DNA of 63,439 nucleotides, counting the filler, from Perkinsus chesapeaki ATCC PRA-425 (Eukaryota; Protista; Perkinsozoa), in assembly GCA_013115145.1 (NCBI GenBank). It is 6 parts of 6 records of this genome, joined end to end, with 100 filler letters (N's around TTAATTAATTAA, not from the genome) between each part and the next. Parts side by side here need not be neighbours in the genome. Positions count along the whole stretch, not along the records: positions 19,017 to 34,306 come from JAAPAO010000729.1; 5 more parts are not named here. One strand, written 5' to 3'. Positions 19,017 to 34,306 of this stretch are shown one piece after another. Made by a program: the position numbers and the translations under genes. Below the pieces are notes generated by a model. That model was not told where the DNA came from, did no database searches, and was given only the letters and a program-made list of their open reading frames with translations. Numbering within the stretch: position 1 is the first letter of the stretch; each line of letters opens with the position of its first letter.

Positions 19017-19051
19017 CTGTGCACACACACCCTCCTTGAAGAATATCGTCG

Positions 19052-20780
19052 ATGAAGGCTCAACAACTTCCGGCTTGTCACTTGATACTACTCGTAGCCA
19101 AAGTACTTTCTATTCACGTAGAAGAAAGGACGTACGACTTCGATATTGTCGAGAAATATAATGCTTTTAAAAAAAGTAAGGATTAGGTCACCTCCGTTAA
19201 CCCGGCAACTCTCTCTTAGCTTCGATTACTCAGGTATGCCATAAGCTTTGACAGTATGGCTGAGGACGCATATCGCCTCGGAAGTATTCAGGAAGAATGT
19301 GATGTTTATAGAGGAAACTAATAGAAGAAGTGGGTGATACATGTCAACGATGCTAATGTTTCTTAATACTTCCCATATATTCGAGCGATATGAGTACGGC
19401 TGAGCTGAGGGTAGAATTCGGTGCCTCATCCGTTTCGGTAGCGACGACAATCTTATTTTCATCATGCAACGTCTGGTTCATGTCGCAAAAACTTAATTGC
19501 AACGTGAGATCTTTAGATTTATCGTATACATTGGAGGTTAACGAGTTCGCCGCCATGACCCAAGACGAGTTCGCCAGAGAGAAGATGGCTTCACCAGATT
19601 CGTTTCCAGTGCATTCTGGTCTGTTAAGCATTATTCTGAAGTCCGCAAGTCGTCTTCTTTAGTAGACATCCCGCTAGGGAACGAACATTATATGAGGAAC
19701 GACTCGCTGGAGGACTTCCCATCAGACCTCAGCTGGGTTGAAAGAGGTGCCGTTAACAGCCCAATTCCTCAGGGTTTATGTGGTAGCTGCTACGCGATAG
19801 GGACATTAGGTAAGAACTGGCTTACTTTGAGGTTATCAATTCCCATTTGATAGCCTACTTGGTGATATCCATCGGATGTCTTATCCTCTAGGTGCTTTGG
19901 AAGCAGCATGCTGGGCTAAAACTGGTACCCTACCCAAACTTTCGGTACAGCAAATAGTTGACTGTTCACGGGAAGAAGGCAACTTGTGAGCGCCTTTACC
20001 AGAAATTTTCTTGCAGAAAATATGTCAATAAGGTTTTTTGTTTTAGGGGTTGTGTGAAAGGCTCATCAGGAATCACCCTGAGGTATATTATCAAGTATGG
20101 CATAGTGTCCGATGAAGACTATCCTTATGAAGCCAAGGAGCAACAGTGCAAGAATGACGTCGTATCTGATAAGACCAAGCAATACTTGAAGGTGAGACCA
20201 GCTCTTCAACACCGACGGTTCTCATGTCATGTGATTCTTTCAGCCGAGAACCCTACGAGTAGACGATGTCGTTCAGGTCGCGGCAAACGATCTCAGAAGT
20301 CTTTTCGTGCAACTTCAAAAGAGCCCCATAGTCATTATGGTTGACGCTAGCGAGCCTGAGTGGCAAGCATACAAGGGGGGGATTCTTGAATGTGAGCCGC
20401 CGATTTCGATAACGTCGAGAATCAATTTCAGCCTTCCCTTGCCAAAAGGAGCCTAATCATGTGGTTCTCCTTGTCGGTTATGGGGTAGAGAAAGGGAAAA
20501 GGCAAGTCTATCGCCCATCCTAAACTTCGTTACTATCCGATAGTTACTGGGTTATAAGAAATAGCTGGGGCACTGGTTGGGGGGAAGGTGGGTATGCTAG
20601 GATTATTAGAGATCCCAACGCTACACAAGGACCTGGTAAGAATACTATATTTCATCACAGATGCTGATAAGACCTATCATCAAGCATCTTGGCCAATCTC
20701 AGGCTTCTGCAATATGATGTATGATTGTGCCGTCCGAATACAATTCTCGGACTCAGCGTCACCACATGCGTGCCGTAAAG
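19052..20780 (+). CDS. Cathepsin L-like papain-family cysteine protease, copy 1; two frameshifts near the 5' end (pseudogene or sequencing error); 3' end approximate
   Basis: Signal [20 protein letters not shown]; I29 propeptide ([30 protein letters not shown]); [10 protein letters not shown]; [10 protein letters not shown]; [10 protein letters not shown]; [18 protein letters not shown]7 run at about 19169-19175 and an extra G at about 19281 relative to copy 2. Confidence 0.88.
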
Positions 20781-21899
20781 GTAATCTAATTTCAACAATC
20801 AAACTGAGTATCGGCGTTCCCCTTAGGTTCATATTAGGTGGCTATATAATCCTGTCGGGCTCAGTCTTTATCAATCCTCCATCTTTTCGAACGCCATGAA
20901 GTCGCGATTAGTCGGAGCGCGCACATGTGCTTTCGCTCCTTCTGCTGTTAATCACCTTTATTAAATGGGCTATAACGGGCCCCACAGGCCTTGACAAAGT
21001 GGTTATTGTGGTTTCACCTAGTCAGTACTTTTCTTGTTCTAATAATGGCGATGAGTTTAATGCAGACCCTGGTGGGCACCGGATCAATTACAAGGTATTT
21101 GTTCATCGGCGATGAATCATCGCACTTCAAGTAAGCGAATTGAAATCTACAACACTCGTGATATCAACAGTTCCCTTGTATCAAAGCACCTCGTCATTCC
21201 CGTGTATCTTGCCGCTTTTCCGGATTTCGTCTTCAGTACTCCGACGTTCCAGGAGTTCGGGGTGCTCCTGCCCTTGTTGTGTTCACTTATCTCACAAAAG
21301 TTACTCATTGCTTTACTTTATCCGCATGATCTCTTGCTTGTAGCTCGCCTATAAATTTAATCGAACTGCTAAGTCTTAGCCGCTGTCTACCAATGATGCT
21401 TTCGGGTCGACACATTAACCCACCTCACTTTTATTATGTCGTGAGTAGATATTATGGAAGTCATTCTGCTTTTAGTAATGTGGAGGATAATCGAATTGAA
21501 AGAATGATTTGAACATTATGTTTTACTATTCAAGTTACAACCTCTCGCTAGCTATTGAGTATAAAACTAAGTCTAGCAGAAGTTCTTGGCACATCCCAAA
21601 TTCTCTTCCACGAATTCTGTGGCGAGTGACGAGAGCTTCGTGTGCGGGCTAAAGAGAGGACAGATGCATATCGCATTCCCATGCTTTATCAAAGAGACGT
21701 TGGTTGCAAAGTGAAGCTCGATGTACCGAATGAACGATTCGAGAAAATTGCAGAAATGGATTACAGCGGCCTTTGAACTCCACGGCCTCTACGGAGCAGT
21801 TCAACCGACCAGCTTTGGATTAGAAGTTTAATATCTCATCCAACTCCCATCAGAACGATCGAGTGTATTCTCGTTCAGTTTTTATCAGAATTCACCTCA

Positions 21900-24320
<2,421 letters not shown>

Positions 24321-24495
24321 GCGGCTTCGCTCCGCTGTTTGCCGCCGCGCCGTTGAGGAAACTCAAGCTCTCGTAAGTGCGCAAGATTAAGAGACAAGTC
24401 TCGTTTGGCTCGGTTCCAGGGCAAGGAAAGGCGTTGGAGTTAGTCAATTCTAAAGCGGGGGTTGTCCTTTGCCTGGCATTTGAGGGAAGTGCGGT

Positions 24496-27400
24496 ATGGC
24501 TCAGTTGTTACTAGACTTGTGGCTCATGTTGATAGCGGGAGAATCTCGCCGCAGCGCTGCGTTCCTTCTTGGAAGCCTTGTATGCTTTGTGGGGGCTGTT
24601 CAAGGGGGAGGCAACTTCTCTCCAGATAGAGTAGGTGATATGATCTTATAGGGAAGGGAGGCGATGCTTTCAGACCGGTGATGCCATTGCAGATCAGTGC
24701 AATCATGTGGACTTTACTGGGGACCATTTGGTAAGGGCTCAGCTGGCTAAAGCTGTGTCCACCAGGGAGCACCCCTATGCGTTATGGGTATGAGGGTATG
24801 CTCATCTTCTGTGTAGAGGACTCTTGGTTCTCTTAGACTGTTGGAGAGGACCGTGGAGCGTTCGCAAGGCACTCCTGTGAAAGAGTTGTTGGCTCGCCAA
24901 GGCGTAACAAAGACATGCAATACGAAGTTCTGACTAAATGTGATGGCCTGCCGACGACGGCCTACTTCCCAGACGAGGAGGGCGCGGTTGATTTCGCTGT
25001 TCAATGGGGCCATCTGCATAAGGTAAAGGAGACGGGCAACGTCATCGGGGCGCGAGAGTCGTCTTTCTTAGTACGACGTCGACTCGGAAGTCCTCGGCGA
25101 TGGATGGGTCGACAAGAATCCCTTCTCCCGTTTCGCTGTCTTCAAGAAGAAGCTTTCAGCTGCTTACGTGGAGTACGATGCTAATCAGAAGCCAAGCAAG
25201 AGGGCGCTGAAGGTGGGGGCGGAGACAGGGGGCACCGATTACTGTGGCTCAGATCGGCACTAAGACTCGAGTCCAGTGCGATGAGGTTACCTCGGGCCCC
25301 ACTGGGTACAGCGATAAGTGGAAGGTGCTGGTAACTTGCACAAAGGAGAAGTCCAAACAGACTAGAACCTTTGATGTCGAGTTTAAGGACAAGACAAGCG
25401 CCATGAGCTTTGCCACTATATGGGGCGGTTATGCGACTGAAGTGAGGGAATTTAGTGGCGCAGTGACGGTGGTTGCATCTTCATTTCAGGTTCCGATGTC
25501 GAGCAAGATGATTAAAGGATCTAACATTAAAGCTGCGGAGCTGCTTGTCAGTCCAGCAACTGGGAGAGCTAGGAAGCGTGTTCTCAAGGTAGGTCCGGCC
25601 TGCAATATAGTGGCAGCCAAAAACCTACGAGAGACAGGCATCCGCTCACCTACACCAGCTCATTTTTGGGCTGCGTCGCGCACCCCAATTTTGTTTGAAT
25701 TCCGCATATGATAACCATTCGGCAGCAACACTTATATGTGCTCGTCTTGTACGGGGTAGTCAGTCGATGAATCGTTGGCAGCGCTCTGCACACTAGGAGT
25801 GGTCTCGGTGGTGGCTTCGTCCTCGAAGCCTTGGTCTGGCAGCAACTCCTTTGCCCATTTTTTTGCTGCTCATTCAGCTCGAAGACGATGTGCCTAGGAT
25901 TTGCCGTGCTGTCACTGATGTGGTCTACAAGGAGGATGGAGTTGCTGCTGACGTCATTGCACAATGCGACGGCGATGATCTGACCATACCCTTCACAGCA
26001 TACCAGAGAGCTGAAAGATTCGCGGCGCGCTGGGGAGGTTTTAAGAAGGTGAAGGGATAGTCATTGGAGCTGAGTGGCCTGGATTTGATTCTGATCAGGT
26101 TGATGAGGATATTGTCAAGAGCTGCCGTAAGATGGACATCGCTGGGCATTCCGGTGAGCTTGTACGGGCTACGGCAGACGTGGCATCGATGGGCAGGAAG
26201 GTTATCGCCGGCCGTCTAGAGGTGAGGCTTGCAAACGGCTTATGGGCTCAGTTCGGTCACACCTGAGGTATGGGCCTTGCCTCCATTCTGCTTCGGTGGT
26301 GACAGCTCAATAAAATATGGCAATTCAGCGCCTCTTGCATTGGAAAAATACATTCGCTTTTGCAAGTTTCACGTACCCGCCTAGGCCGAACCCCCCGACT
26401 CGGGCCATGCTGGAGCTCGGCTTGAACATTCTGGTCTGGTTTCCCTTCAAAGATTGGATGTTTGCTCAAGCATAGGCCGTTACTTAGGCACTCGACGGGT
26501 CCAAGCTCCGCTGTGACCGTGTCAGCGAGCCGGTCATCTACGAGGCTGATACCGATAAGTTCGCTGTGGTGACTAAATGCCAGGACCGCACCACGAGAAT
26601 AGTGTGTGATGATGAAGACTCCGCCTGGAGGTTCTCCGCCCAATGGTCCAACTTCCGTGCCGGGGTGAGCCATTTCTCGGCTGGCGGTCCCGACATCCTT
26701 GCCAGCAGATCTCAGTGAATCTAGGGCTGGTCAGCGCCTCCACTCGCGTAGACGTGAATCACAATGACAAGCTCTTCCCGTTCACCCTGGCCACAGCTAA
26801 TATTGAGAGCCACGTTAAGACACCGAGCGTCCGCATGCGCTGGCTTGGGGTGAGCTGCTTATCTTTCTATGCTTCCAGCTCGGGGTGCATCGCTATCTTC
26901 AATTCAGCTTCACTACGCGGGCACTTCCCCCAAGGACGATGTGGAGCTATCTCGACAGTGGTTCCTGTGCTCCAAAGTTAAGACCATCAGGGAAGCTGAA
27001 AACGGTACTGTTTGCTCGCTAACTGTTCGCGATTCGTGCGCAGCAGGCGAGTTCCAAGTGATGACGGTCTGCGGTCTGTCCATCCGTAACCGCACCCCGA
27101 CTCCGGAGCACCGCGATAACGAAGTTGCGGTCGTCTTCGCTAAGAGGGAACAAGCAGAGGAGTTCGCTATCCAGTGGGGCCAATACAATCCTGTAGGCAC
27201 CTTATGCACAACGGTAGCCGAGCAAGAGCTAGATTATGTCAGATGCACACTCATGACGTCGGAGCTATCTACAATACCGATCCTCTCGTCGATGTCCAAA
27301 CCGCCGCCTACTACCGCGATTCCTTCTCGGGGCAGCGATCGGGGAGAACCTTCACCGTAGGGCTTGTAGACTGCAGCTTGTTGGCTACCGTTGGTCTTTA

Positions 27401-30400
27401 TCGTAGACACGCGATGCTTCTTATGACTGCGGCGCATTGACTGGCATGGAACACCAAGTCAACGGCAACGTATACATATATACGAAGTGCTCGGGACAGA
27501 GGAACAAGGAAGACCTTCCCTCTGCTGAGGTAGATGCTCGGTGGGCTCTCGAGCAACTGCTGGATTTGCGATTTGCTCTGGCAGACTCAGCTGGTATTAA
27601 TGAGGGCCGAGACAGCTGTTAAGTGGGCGGTGAAGTGGGGAGGTGATGCTACTCCTGAAGTAAGTGCCTGGTTGTGTTAGTCTGTAGTCTAGCCCTGTAC
27701 GACCCGATCAGATCCATATGTCATCCGACATTATTTCGGACGCCACAGCTAGTGTTCAGGGCCAAGTTAGTGGCAGCGTTGCCGTGGCCAAACTCGTTTA
27801 CGCCTCTTCGGGAACCCTCGATAAAAGATTCCTCGAGGTGGGAAATGTGTAGACGTGCTGCGGGTATATCTCTGAATCAGCTAAGCGATGGCAGCGGAAA
27901 GTCCTTCGTTTACACCTGTGAAGGCGTCTCTCCGGAGATCAGCGTCCACGGTGAGAGCTACACTGTTAAGGTAGACTGTCCCATTGGTAACGGTATTGCG
28001 AAACCTACGGCCAGGCTTTGTGCGGTACCTCTACCGTTGAAATAACCTTCCCAAGTGAGAAGCTCGGAGTTGCCTTTGCTCGTTATTTTGGGGGCCTCCA
28101 CAGTGCGAGCGTAAGTGTGACAGAACATCAATGCTGCGCTGGTAGCTCGTAAATTCCCAGGTTGATTCGGATAGCGAGTTCATTGGCTCGTGTCGCAACG
28201 TTGTGATTGGAACGGCAGGCGGTGTCCATGAACTTAAGCACGCTCGCCTTCGGGAGGAACTTGGCACAGGAGAACTGAAGAGGCTTCTAGTGGTAAGTGC
28301 GATTCCTGTGCAGAAATGTTTCAGAAATGTGTGTGCTAGGTCCAGGGAGAACAACAAGAGCTAAGCTGCTCTCCGGTCACGAATCCGCCGGAGTTTGACG
28401 AAGGCGTTTACAAGCTTACCGTCGTTTGTGGCGCAAAACCCGTTACCATTACCTGTACCGAGTCTGATTCGGCAGTGCTCTTCGCCACTCGTTGGGGTGC
28501 ATACCCGTACTCAGAAGTAAGGGTTTGCAATAGGAAGTCGGCGTGCTTCATGGGACGCTCACATTGCTCTCTTTCAGCTTGGTGTCAAGCTTTCTTCGGG
28601 GGTGTGCTCGAATGCCCGGCTGGATGGCGACGCAGGTTGGATGGTGAAGAGACAAACCGTTGCCATAACGGGAACAACTCGAAGCTTCATGGTGAGAAGA
28701 TCGGGAGGGTACAGAGTTTCAATGTGGAAATGCACGGCTCCGGTGGCTCAATCGGATAGAGCGTTGGACTTCTAATCCAAAGGTTGCGGGTTCAAGCCCC
28801 GCCCGGAGTATTTTATTATTTTTTACCGTGCCTCAGAAGCATGTCATGGATTTGTGTGCAGGTTGAGAAAGGAGGCGTTTCAAGACGCGTGGAGTGCAAT
28901 GGCTTGACAAACAATCCTCAAGTGGGGCTAGGCGAGATAGAGATATCAATCGACTGCCATGACTCCGCCGTCCATGGCAAACCCCTGAAGGTAACCATAC
29001 AATCACCAACAAGCCACTAGTATCCCTACTTCAGTTGGAGTTGCTGTGCTTAAGCCCACCAGATGCAGTCCAAGTTTGTAAGGGACCGCTGTTTGAGAAG
29101 AATGATGCCATCGTGAGTTGTCGGATATGAGCAGGGTAGATAGTCGGTCCTACTACTACTAGGTTGAGATCAGCAGTCATGTCCGCCTGGCATGTGATGT
29201 CGTCACAGTCTCTGGGCAGTCAGATGTGATGCAGGTGGCATCGGCCAGTATTCAAGACTCAGCAGTGGTGGTTGAGGTAAGCTTTATGATCCTCATCAGG
29301 ATGTGATAACTCTCCTCCAATCAGATCTCCGGACTCGGTCAGTCCAACACTAGGCAGTTTTCCTGCTCTCACTTGCTCGGTCCGCCGGAGACTACAGATC
29401 ACCAGACACTTATGCTCCACGCTCAATGCGAGGGCGAGGTAGAGCATTTCCCAATTGAACTACCTGATCCGCCCGAATTGACCTCGAAATCCCCACCACA
29501 GGTGCTCAATTTTGAATGCAAAGACCCCGCGGCCGCCCTGCAGTTGGCATCCTGGGGACAGATAGAGCAGCCTGCGGTATGTTACCCTGGGATGAAGTTA
29601 TGTCTCAATGAGCCCTTTAGATCGCTCTTCAGCAAGAGGTGGTCAGTTCTTGTCCTGAGGTTCGACAACAAGGCATTTCAAACGGCTTTTCGCTCACCAG
29701 GGTGAGTTTGATAAAGCGCCAAACACGCGTGCCATACTAAAAATATCAGGCCACATACAAGCCGAGTTTCGTGAAGCAGTCGGGTGGGGAACAGAAACGT
29801 TGGTTGACGGTACGTCGGTGCGGCTCGGATTGTGTCTGACATGCAGGCCATCAGATAACCCTGAGAAACGAGGAGCCCAGTTATGAGGACTCAGACTTTT
29901 CCCTCGCCTGCAGTGCTGTGGCGAGCACGCCGGAGCCCTTCGTTACACTCAACCGAGATGTTGAGAAATATAAAGTGATTGTAGAGTGTGATGGAGCTGA
30001 AGGCATGGGTGGCAGCACTAAGGTTGAAGTGAGCCGCCGGTGTTGGTCTCCTGAATACAAAAGGCTCTCGTAGGTATTATGTGACGATTTCCACAATGCA
30101 ATGCAGCTCGCTACGACTTGGGGCTCCCTGGAAACTTCCCATGCGGTAAGCTGAATCGGTTGAGGGTACGTGGTTGGGCTGATGGCGGATGGTGTAGGCT
30201 ATGATTGAACTCACTACGCTGCACACTCACCTGAAGGCGGCCTGGCTAGATGGTGCACAAGTGGACACTAACAAGGTTCATATGTTCGTCGCGCGCCCTA
30301 AAAATACTGAGGCCCATGGATCCAGCTTCCTACAAGTACAGGAGAGTCTCGAAGGAAATATGTTGCAAGTAAAACGCTTTCTGTTTTGGTTCCTCCCTGA

Positions 30401-31697
30401 CAGCCGGCTCTGCTTAGATTGGTACCATCTCCTACAAGTGCGACTCGAATGCCCAGCACCGTGTCTACTTTAAGCAATTCTTCTATTATGTCACAATGCA
30501 GTGCAATGAATACGCACCCGATAAGACTAGTCTGGAGGGCTCTCATAAAGTGACTTTAATCGCTAACACTGAGGAGGGTGCACTTACAGTCGCCAAGGCC
30601 TTCGCCGGGATGCGAGTCGACAAGGTGGGTTCGTTTTCTTCGAGCTTCCTCCCTCTGCAAACAGCTGAAGTCCATCCTTATGATGTCCCACGGCTCGCAT
30701 ACCCCCCAGATTACCCGTTATCAGGTATGGATCGATCACACTCTCTACTTTGCCGGTGAGGAGGGTGTCACTAAGATCAGCGACACCAACGCTGATCTCA
30801 CCCAGGCTTACATCAATGTGTTCCCTCGCGAATACATTCTAGATGTAAGGCAGCGGCATCGGCGGCTCGGCATTATCCATTCATCCACTCAGTTCAACGG
30901 TGCATTCCAGTACAGCTGTATCGAGGCATCCCAGGCTCCAAGGTATACCACCGACAACATGTATCAAGTATCCCTCACTTGCGGCAAACGTGTTGAGGAC
31001 TCCGAACCCGAACAGAAGGACCAAGTCGTCACCGTTGGCTTCTCTACGCCCGTGAAGGCCATTGGCTTCTCAAACGGTTTCGGCGGGCTCCTGTATCACG
31101 AGGTGATGATGAATGCGCGAGTTGAGGGGATTGCACTGGTGCTTCTGTAGGTTGATTTTGATCCTAAGATTACACATACTGTCAACTATATCGCTCCTTT
31201 GCCCGAGCAACACATGGGAAGGGAAGAGATTTTCCCGCTCAAGAGGGCCACGGTCAAGTTCGACCTGACTGGTCGTCTCGTCTCTCGCCGGCTTGAAGTG
31301 GGTTGTTAGCTCTGTCTCATCTGGAATAGAAAGTACCTTTGTTCAGTTCCTTCGCGCCGACCACTTTTATGGGAGTGACAATGGTGAGCGCACCTACCAC
31401 GCTGTGAAGTTCGAGTGCGATGAGAAGCTCACTCTCGACCGCAAGTCCGACAAATCCGGCAATCTTATCGCCACTACGCTAACCGCTACGTGTGTCGAAA
31501 CTTACGGTGGCTTCCATCAACAACACGGTGACAAAGTGAAGGTTCTGTTGGCTTTCCTGAGGTTCCCTGATGCTGCCGAACATTTCATGAGTTGGTGGCG
31601 CGGCAATTTCAAGCCTGTCGCTGTTCAAGAGGATTCGCCGATCAACAGCGCTCAGGCATCTGGATGGTTGAAGGATATCAGATACTTACTCGGATAG
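24496..31697 (+). CDS. Giant multi-exon predicted secreted protein with about 14 diverged tandem copies of an unrecognised two-Cys module ending F-x5-A-x2-FA-x2-WG
   Basis: First exon gives a hydrophobic signal (AAFLLGSLVCFVGAVQG). Successive GT-AG-bounded exons each yield C-x(n)-[YFW]xVxxxC-x(n)-strand-helix-WG; stop TAG at 31695-31697. I found no internal terminal exon, but not every junction was resolved. Confidence 0.7.
28737..28810 (+). tRNA. tRNA-Arg (anticodon TCT), intronless, in the sense orientation inside an intron of the giant repeat gene
   Basis: GCTCCGG/CCGGAGT acceptor, TGGCTCAATCGGATAGAGC D arm, TTGGA-CT TCT AA-TCCAA, GCGGGTTCAAGCCCCGC T arm, T-rich terminator downstream. Confidence 0.95.
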
Positions 31698-32668
31698 ATG
31701 ATGGTGTTAATAACGTGTTTTACAAGGTGTTCGTCTTTCATGCTATGGTGTGATTAAATGAAAATAATGCCATGTTTATCAGTTGTACTGTGGACTCCCC
31801 TACTTGCGTTCCGAGTCACTCGAAAGTGCATGCACAAGACACCTGAGATGACGAGCACCTCTCGATAGCTTCAACATGAGCCAGACCGAATCTCCGCTCC
31901 GAGCCTCCTATAGCAACAGACAAAGTCTAATCTGGCGTGTAACCTCTCTCTGTTGTTGTCAGTGGTATGGAATTCGCTCTCATGATTCTGTGACAAGTTC
32001 AGCACTGTCTCCTGGTATTAGTACAGTACTAGTAGTCCTGACTACAGTAGACCATCGTGGTGCACTCCTGAGCCACATATACCATCATTATCTCTCATAT
32101 ACATAGGCATACTAGATGACTGTGGCATGCGGGAGTGAGAGCAGACGGCTGAACGAAACCGGAGAAAACCTACTGAACAATATGCGAGGAGGCGAAAGTT
32201 ATGATGGAGCGTATCCCCGAGGGTGACGTGTAGTTCCAAAAAACTTTGATAGAAAGCGAATCACAGCCGGTTGGGCACCTCCAGTCACATTAAAAATCAA
32301 TAAGTGCGCATATTTTTGATGACGTCGTCGAACAGACGTTCGACAGGGTCTGTGATTCGTGATGACTCGTATGGAGTCTGAGACCAGTGAGACGCACTGA
32401 GCCTATGACGCTCCCTGTTCATGCGTGTATCGAAAAGTAGTTTGAAACGCTCGCTTACGACGTATTGCTTTATGCGAACGAACAAAACGAATTACGAAAC
32501 AACACAACAAAGGTTTATCCACGGGTTTCGAGGACAGATCGAATGGCGACTTTGTTAGGAACACAGATGGATAAGCGTGATCACATGTGAAAGACGGTGA
32601 TATGGCTCCATTAGTGAAGTATTCTACACGAATGTCATACACGTTCCCTCCCTTCGTGAACATCTCCA

Positions 32669-34306
32669 ATGAAGTCCCAACACATTGCAGCTTATCACTT
32701 GGTCCTCCTCGTAACCAGAGTTCTCTCCTTCCATCTCGAAGGGAAAACATATGACTCCGACACTATCGATAGATATGCTGCCTTCAAGAAGAAGTAAAAA
32801 CTTAACCGCCTCCGCGAAGATGTGGTCCTCTATTTCGATCACTCAGGTATGCCATAAGCTTTGACAGTATGGCTGAGGACGCATATCGCCTCGAAGTATT
32901 CACGAAGAATGTGATGTTTATAGAGGAAACTAATAGAAGAAGTGGGTGATACATGTCAACGATGCTAATGTTCCTTAATACTTCCCACCTACTCGAGCGA
33001 TATGAGTACGGCTGAGCTGAGGGTAGAATTTGGTGCCTAATCCGTTTCGGTGGCGATGACAACCTTATTTTCATCATGCAACCTCTGGTTCATGTCGCAA
33101 AAACTTAATTGCAACGTGAGATCTTTAGATTTATCGTATACATTGGAGGTTAACGAGTTCGCCGCCATGACCCAAGGAGAGTTCGCCAGAGAGAAGATGG
33201 CTTCACCAGATTCGTTTCCAGTGCATTCTGGTCTGTCAAGCATTACTCTGAAGTCCGCAAGTCGTCTTCTTTAGTAGACATCCCGCTAGGGAACGAACAT
33301 TATATGAGGAACGACTCGCTGGAGGACTTCCCATCAGACCTCAGCTGGGTTGAAAGAGGTGCCGTTAACAGCCCAATTCCTCAGGGCCCATGTGATAGCT
33401 GCTACGCGATAGGGACGTTAGGTAAGAACTGGCTCACTTTGAGGTTATCAATTCCCATTTGATAACCTACTTGGTGATATCCATCGGATGTCTTATCCTC
33501 CAGGTGCTTTGGAAGCAGCATGCTGGGCTAAAACTGGTACCCTACCCAAACTTTCGGTACAGCAAATAGTTGACTGTTCACGGGAAGAAGGCAACTTGTG
33601 AGCGCCTTTACCAAAAATTTTCTTGCAGAAAATATTTGTCAATAAGGTTTTTTGTTTTAGAGGTTGTGTGACAGGCTCACAAGGGTTCACCCTGAGGTAT
33701 ATAGCCAAGTATGGCATAGTGTCCGATGAAGACTATCCTTATGAAGCCAAGGAGCAACAGTGCAAGAATGACGTCGTATCTGATAAGACCAAGCAATACT
33801 TGAAGGTGAGACCAGCTCTTCAATACCGACGGTTCTCATGTGTGATTCTTTCAGCCGAGAAACCTACAAATTGTAGGTTGTAGGCTACAATCACACGATG
33901 TCGTTCGGGTCGCGGCAAACGATCTCAGAAGTCTTTTCGTGCAACTTCAAAAGAGCCCCATAGTCATTATGATTGACGCCAGCGAGCCTGAGTGGCGAGC
34001 ATACAAGGGAGGGATTCTTGAATGTGAGCCGCCGATTTCGATAACGTCGAGAATCAAAGTCAGCCTTCCCTTGCCAAAGTGCGCCAAATCACATGGTTCT
34101 CCTTGTCGGTTATGGAATGGAAAAAGGGAAAAGGCAAGCCCGCCTCTCATCATGAACTTCGTGAACTATCCGATAGTTACTGGGTTATAAGAAATAGCTG
34201 GGGCACTGGTTGGGGGGAAGGTGGGTATCGAAGGATTGGTAACGATGGCATCGCCACACTTATTGTTTCTGATGCCAATGCTGACTCGTACGGTGGTATA
34301 CTACTC
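32669..34306 (+). CDS. Cathepsin L-like cysteine protease, copy 2; 3' end diverges and is truncated at the contig end
   Basis: Signal MKSQHIAAYHLVLLVTRVLS; [37 protein letters not shown]; QGPCDSCYAI; NHMVLLVGYG; [12 protein letters not shown]. Near-identical to copy 1 over 32834-34228. Confidence 0.88.

Follow-up and report, generated by a model that had tools for sequence, protein, structure and literature searches.

The window analyzed here, a 63,439-nucleotide stretch of Perkinsus chesapeaki DNA, carries on its + strand, between positions 24496 and 31697, a large gene that we predict to encode a secreted protein built from 14 tandem modules. The gene lies in the piece examined (19017-34306 of the window, JAAPAO010000729.1), which is eukaryotic DNA with short GT-AG introns. 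An original prediction, made from the sequence alone, had proposed one long gene of 1,600-1,900 amino acids (aa), with a signal-peptide exon followed by about 14 two-cysteine modules, and both our splice model and the comparison with orthologues agree with it. Exons were chained by dynamic programming that combined codon log-odds with a length prior and with splice-site matrices, the latter trained on clear introns; one manual correction was made. The resulting model has 34 predicted exons and 33 introns, ends with a stop codon at 31695-31697, and encodes a predicted protein of ~1,637 aa consisting of a signal peptide, 14 modules of ~100-140 aa, and a short tail.

The repeat is evident at the protein level. 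No DNA-level repeat extends over the giant gene, as had been proposed, and the 14 module cores follow each other on the + strand with a start-to-start spacing of 397-625 bp. All twelve motif strings quoted in the original prediction were recovered on the + strand close to where it had placed them, and the two modules it called degenerate have cores at 28886-28990 and 30430-30609. Pairwise phmmer comparison of the 518 six-frame stop-to-stop segments of the piece gave reciprocal matches among five segments (E-values from 3e-4 to 9e-4). When a hidden Markov model (HMM) of six cores (modules 1-5 and 8) was run against the same segments, untrained cores were recovered at E 1.4e-4 to 0.03, and the best 14 matches were all on the + strand and all within 24.8-31.2 kb. 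Matches down to E ~0.5 were likewise + strand and inside the gene; no minus-strand or outside-gene segment scored below E ~2, where the first outside match appeared. After iteration of the profile, ten segments reached E 1e-7 or better. All matches of a full-module HMM were to + strand segments, located in the window or in four orthologous or paralogous loci. Identity between the 14 modules is 9-26% (median, 18%). From these results we conclude that the 14-module repeat is real, far beyond chance.

Module 1 (24674-25022) is predicted to consist of an N-half exon (24674-24787) and a C-half exon (24837-25022), and module 2 (25072-25441) of exons 25072-25212 and 25253-25441. The halves of module 3 (25490-26048; exons 25490-25588 and 25878-26048) and module 4 (26099-26664; exons 26099-26221 and 26488-26664) are separated by introns of 289 and 266 nt, respectively. 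Module 5 (26706-27192) comprises exons 26706-26849 and 26908-27192; module 6 (27243-27659), exons 27243-27356, 27407-27529, and 27585-27659; module 7 (27712-28110), exons 27712-27837, 27881-27970, and 28015-28110; and module 8 (28161-28516), exons 28161-28292 and 28340-28516. The degenerate module 9 (28578-29112) is split between halves by a 170-nt intron holding a tRNA gene and has exons 28578-28691, 28862-28990, and 29035-29112. Module 10 (29163-29576) uses exons 29163-29276 and 29325-29576, module 11 (29633-30145) exons 29633-29701, 29750-29783, 29847-30028, and 30074-30145, and module 12 (30198-30624), with a degenerate helix motif AKAFAG, exons 30198-30335 and 30418-30624. Module 13 (30725-31102; exons 30725-30844 and 30893-31102) precedes module 14, which is followed by a tail of ~35 aa and the stop codon (31151-31697; exons 31151-31297 and 31347-31697), with no C-terminal hydrophobic segment. 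All modules are on the + strand.

The 33 predicted introns have a median length of 50 nt (most, 40-63 nt) and the consensus GTRRG...YAG. The frame is open across all 33 junctions, and all introns except one are in phase 0. Intron sites recur twice per module: between the module halves and a few codons past the WGG motif that ends it, the latter being the recurrent intron already noticed in the original prediction. This phase-0 symmetry at two recurrent sites matches what exon-block duplication predicts, and the regular exon pattern of the model fits growth of the array by that route.

An alignment of the 14 modelled modules revealed a common pattern that spans the whole module length. In the alignment work, rows consisting of an N-half alone were left out, as most of them were misplaced by MAFFT. 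The beta-rich N-half carries a strand-like motif, h-x-h-x-x-A-x-h, and a basic K/R-R-x-L end. The order in the C-half is C, ~12-20 residues, Y-x-V-x-x-x-C, a loop, x-V-x-F, five residues, and A-x2-FA-x2-WGG, or two to three strands followed by a C-terminal amphipathic helix with a WGG end. Classical PH domains (PF00169) have a conserved Trp in their C-terminal helix; a Trp that may or may not correspond to it stands at the helix end in 10 of the 14 window modules and in all paralogues; it is replaced by Phe in three window modules and has no counterpart in module 9. The two core cysteines are invariant (14/14 modules). In addition, modules 4, 8, 9, 10, and 11 form a four-Cys type, with an extra Cys near the start and a Cys in place of the last-strand Phe. 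The co-occurrence of the two extra residues is indicative only, because the modules are not independent (Fisher p 0.003). Module 5 has its extra Cys pair in an inserted loop. The mature predicted protein contains 42 cysteines, an even number, and the cysteines probably form intradomain disulfides.

Orthologous contigs of P. marinus and of another Perkinsus (run SRR12548988) retain every module. In a tblastn search, the splice model matched L004 and L005 over aa 17-923 and L003 over aa 915-1610, all three being contigs of the Logan assembly of SRR12548988, and the exons are kept at the protein level in contigs L001, L003, L004, and L005. The junctions of the annotated P. marinus protein Pmar_PMAR028364 agree with ours for modules 12-14. 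Orthologous modules share 63-78% aa identity, and over 18 exon pairs the proportion of nonsynonymous differences (pN) was 0.154 versus 0.79 (saturated) for synonymous ones (pS). It follows from these comparisons that the gene is real and coding and is under purifying selection in at least three Perkinsus lineages. Because identity is 63-78% between species and only 18% between modules, each position in the array has kept its own identity since before the species split. We also observed that the three longest introns of the window gene (289, 266, and 170 nt) are shorter in the related species. One and the same stretch of the orthologous gene is represented in both L004 and L005, and by eye their module-1 core peptides differ at about one residue in six; the pair could represent diverged haplotypes, recent paralogues, or mixed strains.

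Exon 1 (24496-24630, + strand) encodes the putative signal peptide, with a second ATG at 24526 giving a signal of canonical length. A hydrophobicity scan of the whole predicted protein found its sole strongly hydrophobic 19-aa window at aa 17-40. The orthologue N termini in L004 and L005 show the same layout as exon 1, with a short basic stretch, a hydrophobic core, and small residues, and the paralogues P0007 (FOL47_003495), P0008, and P0009 likewise start with signal-like peptides. No C-terminal membrane anchor, glycosylphosphatidylinositol (GPI)-like tail, or C-terminal retention signal was seen in the predicted protein, which has just three N-x-S/T sites and a net charge of ~-37. We infer that the protein enters the secretory pathway.

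To define the distribution of the family, a profile built from the window modules only (A1) was searched against 1.84 billion protein representatives with a cut-off of E 1e-3. Seven matches were obtained, of which six are true, all from Perkinsus. Five of the seven represent the orthologous gene in fragmentary form (one P. marinus sequence and four from SRR12548988, three of the latter traced to L003-L005). Another, P. chesapeaki FOL47_003495 (P0007, KAF4667532.1; E 7e-5), is a true paralogue. The remaining match, a 1359-aa bacterial repeat protein (P0004), is spurious and due to low complexity. Relatives of FOL47_003495 are found in P. olseni (FOZ63_010395 and FOZ62_000844). In P. chesapeaki JAAPAO010000209.1 (10001-21421), the two-module FOL47_003495 precedes another called gene, 4638 aa long, which opens with the same pair of modules and goes on to acidic repeats and no fewer than eight additional modules joined by poly-Thr (mucin-like) linkers; this second gene was absent from the matches of the A1 search of protein representatives. 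All Perkinsus family members are named "hypothetical protein." Pfam gave no consistent match for exon pieces, paralogues, or a set of 39 modules, with no family common to more than two of the 39 modules at E up to 10 and none from the PH clan; a PDB sequence-profile search returned nothing except one chance row at E 7.4. A search of full-text literature on the family accessions, on Perkinsus secretome and wall proteins, and on extracellular PH-like folds found nothing relevant. Hence the sources searched bear out the proposal of an unrecognised family occurring in perkinsids (P. marinus, P. olseni, P. chesapeaki, and the source of SRR12548988), and in these databases the family is restricted to Perkinsus. 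A single Pfam match of P. olseni paralogue P0009 to NDUS4/NDUFS4 (PF04800; residues 252-277, E 0.026, 15.2 bits versus a cut-off of 31.9) was rejected as a motif coincidence. It falls on the strand-helix motif h-h-F-x5-A-x2-FA-x2-WG; NDUS4 did not recur in the 39-module alignment and was seen as a single low row in one ESM Atlas shape list.

The original prediction had likened the modules to PH/EVH1 folds. Pfam and PDB profile searches gave no sequence-profile match to the PH-like superfold (CL0266, including PF00169, PF00568, PF00638, and PF00640). AlphaFold2 (AF2) models were also examined. One was made for the P. marinus orthologue of module 13 (39 alignment rows) and a second for P0009 residues 23-285, which hold two modules, A and B (35 rows). 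Fold searches with the module-13 model (Foldseek, VIA, Atlas) gave no clear structural match; about one-third of its weak matches are PH-like, and a Foldseek row for Pfs230 (E 1.3) is at chance level. The P0009 model has a predicted local confidence (pLDDT) of 80.6, with ~90 for module A, and shows six to seven strands and then one helix in each module. The structures returned for it were the RanBD of Nup50/Nup2, the EVH1 domains of Homer and VASP, the PTB domains of IRS-1 and GULP1, and Dcp1, with RanBD and EVH1 nearest. Tandem-PH proteins (centaurin alpha-1, Rtt106) were among the best Foldseek rows. In the Atlas shape search, Ran_BP1/WH1 clusters came first whether the query was the AF2 model or the Atlas's independently made P0009 model. 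The modelled paralogue modules thus display the hallmark of the PH-like superfold, a seven-strand antiparallel beta-sandwich with a C-terminal helix in ~100-120 aa, and a confident fold is predicted for this P. olseni paralogue only.

Window modules were connected to the paralogues by the A1 match to P0007 (E 7e-5) and by hhalign. The window-only cores (A1) aligned with paralogue module A (A5) with a probability of 96.2% (E 2.2e-9) and with module B with 71.5% (E 3.6e-5), and independent full rows (A8) gave 96.7% and 80.2%, respectively; a comparison of A3 with A5 was not counted, as it had rows common to both sides. Every one of these window-paralogue alignments is limited to the C-half, which in the model begins as strand 4 ends and takes in the helix. 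Paralogue modules A and B are themselves homologous over 100 columns. The PH/EVH1 proposal thus holds up, with the confident fold predicted for the P. olseni paralogue and the window modules tied to it in sequence through their C-halves. The homology of the C-half, the equal length and position of the halves, the strand-like pattern of the N-half, and the covarying Cys pair together suggest that the window module folds as a PH-like beta-sandwich with a C-terminal helix as its cap, most like the RanBD and EVH1 domains. The first-strand region and the last strand are neighbours in a PH sandwich, and the extra Cys pair would bridge them.

Upstream of the giant gene, the exons of an SRP54 gene occupy 22502-24163 (+ strand; Pfam SRP54 GTPase match at 22502-22717, E 8e-11) and stop ~330 nt before its start codon, which suggests that intergenic spacers are short in the P. 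chesapeaki genome. Two direct copies of a further sequence (19040-20670 and 32660-34306), 88-98% identical and spaced by 13.6 kb, flank SRP54 and the giant gene. Both carry exons of a papain-family (Peptidase_C1) protease, and the second runs off the edge of the piece. They could have arisen by tandem duplication of a segment or by duplication in the assembly.

Taken together, the most probable reading, in which we place somewhat better than even trust, is a single gene for a secreted protein with a signal peptide, 14 tandem Perkinsus-restricted PH-like modules, and a short tail lacking a membrane anchor. The signal peptide would route the protein into the secretory pathway, where intradomain disulfides may stabilise each module. 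Outside the cell, with modules arranged like beads on a string, it may act as a scaffold or adhesive in the wall or on the surface of the parasite. Every module may present its own conserved, position-specific binding surface, as conservation between species is far above the likeness between modules. A scaffold or adhesive role is favoured by the conserved core residues, the lack of a basic lipid loop, and nearest structures that bind proteins or peptides. Several points weigh against this picture. The gene model was computed here and is a prediction, checked against orthologues; exons 29750-29783 (the least certain) and 29035-29112 and the long introns are uncertain, two small runs labelled as the same species share next to no words with the stretch, and no reads matched 26000-31700, which is not proof of silence. 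The signal peptide was called by eye and with the hydrophobicity scan. Three cysteines in module 1 and five in module 9 (the four-Cys set plus one) do not pair evenly. The module-13 AF2 model is confident only in the C-half (three strands and the helix), with a poor or unfolded N-half, and the N-half of the window modules has no significant profile similarity to that of the paralogues. The extracellular scaffold or adhesive role, finally, is conjectural.

The first alternative to be weighed concerns the number of genes. A tRNA-Arg(TCT) gene (28737-28810, + strand; ARAGORN; Rfam RF00005, 72.4 bits) lies in the 170-nt intron 28692-28861, between the two halves of module 9 (N-half, 28578-28691; C-half, 28862-28990). 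The locus might accordingly hold two or more independent genes forming a small tandem family, for example 24496-~28691 and ~28862-31697. The presence of a gene transcribed by RNA polymerase III on the same strand in the middle of the locus would fit this, as would gaps of 170-289 nt, which are possible as spacers given the ~330 nt upstream, splice joins that are predictions, and annotated Perkinsus models of the giant gene that are short fragments. However, those short models were produced either by prokaryote-style open reading frame (ORF) calling or on contigs 1.2-8 kb long. The three longest noncoding gaps all split module halves, and none lies between modules. Contigs L004 and L005 end with this tRNA and L003 opens with it, flanked by the same two half-modules, indicating that its position within module 9 is conserved between species. 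A second gene would begin with half a domain and no signal peptide, and the uninterrupted frame with its almost uniformly phase-0 junctions also argues against separate genes. We consider a multi-gene locus quite improbable and, given the single 5' signal peptide and long gaps that fall inside modules, read the locus as one gene with a nested tRNA. The assemblies break at the tRNA-Arg gene.

The remaining alternatives accept one gene and differ in fold, location, or ligand. The window modules may not be PH-like at all and may share with the paralogues only a C-terminal strand-strand-strand-helix unit, set in some other or new small disulfide-bonded fold. The unmatched N-half and the poor module-13 model, with no clear structural match, speak for this; yet the length, position, and alternating strand-like pattern of the N-half are the same in all 14 modules, paralogue module types A and B, homologous over 100 columns, are both PH-like in models, even the poor model's weak matches are PH-like in about a third of cases, and the covarying Cys pair would join two neighbours of the PH fold. 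We regard a non-PH fold as unlikely. It is also conceivable, if somewhat doubtful, that the protein stays inside the secretory system, as cargo or a resident of, for example, a vacuole, a vesicle that forms the wall, or an apical organelle in the zoospore, rather than being an exposed wall or surface component, since a signal peptide indicates entry into the endoplasmic reticulum only and the protein has few N-x-S/T sites and neither an anchor nor a GPI-like tail. Against an internal location, no C-terminal retention signal was seen, and the poly-Thr mucin-like linkers and long acidic tails of the paralogues are typical of exposed proteins, although neither point is decisive. Binding of phosphoinositides or other lipids in the manner of classical PH domains would be in keeping with the predicted PH-like fold, and lipid binding was among the functions suggested in the original prediction, along with adhesin and effector roles, but we judge it very improbable: conservation falls on core residues (Cys, Ala, Phe, Trp, and Gly), the N-half loops contain no conserved basic motif, RanBD and EVH1 bind proteins or peptides, and the net charge is strongly negative.

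PH-like domains rank with the most common interaction modules inside eukaryotic cells, and in oyster and clam farming Perkinsus is a major pathogen. If the single-gene, PH-like reading is true, the range of the PH-like fold extends to the oxidising extracellular space, and Perkinsus possesses a new genus-restricted family that could be used as a marker or antigen of the wall or surface and as a way into the contact between host and parasite. A bolder proposal, tentative and on balance not expected, is that this is the first family of extracellular disulfide-locked PH-like domains, invented or recruited in the Perkinsus lineage and expanded into giant arrays (14 modules here and the 4638-aa mucin-linked relative in P. 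chesapeaki). Such arrays would form a coat on the parasite or its wall and attach to bivalve peptides or glycans in a module-specific manner. In every available Perkinsus annotation, this ~1,640-aa gene has been obscured by prokaryote-style ORF calling and short contigs. The fold class is a known one. Nothing searched describes the family, its extracellular setting, the Cys pattern, or the architecture of the array, and secreted Cys-bearing PH-like tandem arrays had no description in Pfam, PDB sequences, the 1.84e9 protein representatives, or the full-text papers searched.

Among known systems, RanBD (PF00638; human RanBP3, PDB 2y8f) and EVH1/WH1 (PF00568; Homer1, PDB 1i2h) are the closest in predicted shape, with no sequence similarity to the Perkinsus modules (Pfam negative). 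They are nuclear or cytosolic, lack conserved cysteines, and occur once or a few times per protein, whereas the Perkinsus family has a signal peptide, two invariant cysteines, and arrays of 14 or more modules. PH and PTB domains of CL0266 (SHARPIN, 4emo; USP37, 3u12; IRS-1, 5u1m) have no profile match to the modules either, and the basic beta1-beta2 phosphoinositide loop and cytosolic location of classical PH domains (PF00169) have no equivalent in them. The Plasmodium 6-Cys (s48/45) and Toxoplasma SRS proteins offer an analogy only: they too are lineage-restricted, disulfide-bonded beta-sandwich modules arranged in tandem in secreted or surface proteins of parasitic alveolates. Their fold and Cys pattern are different (four to six cysteines, compared with two invariant ones and four in five modules here), and the Perkinsus modules have no Pfam s48_45 or SAG match. 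The true relatives are the paralogues FOL47_003495, its 4638-aa neighbour, FOZ63_010395, and FOZ62_000844, which belong to the same domain family and have signal peptides. These contain either two modules and a helical linker or many modules with poly-Thr or acidic spacers, while the window protein dispenses with such linkers and strings its 14 modules head to tail.

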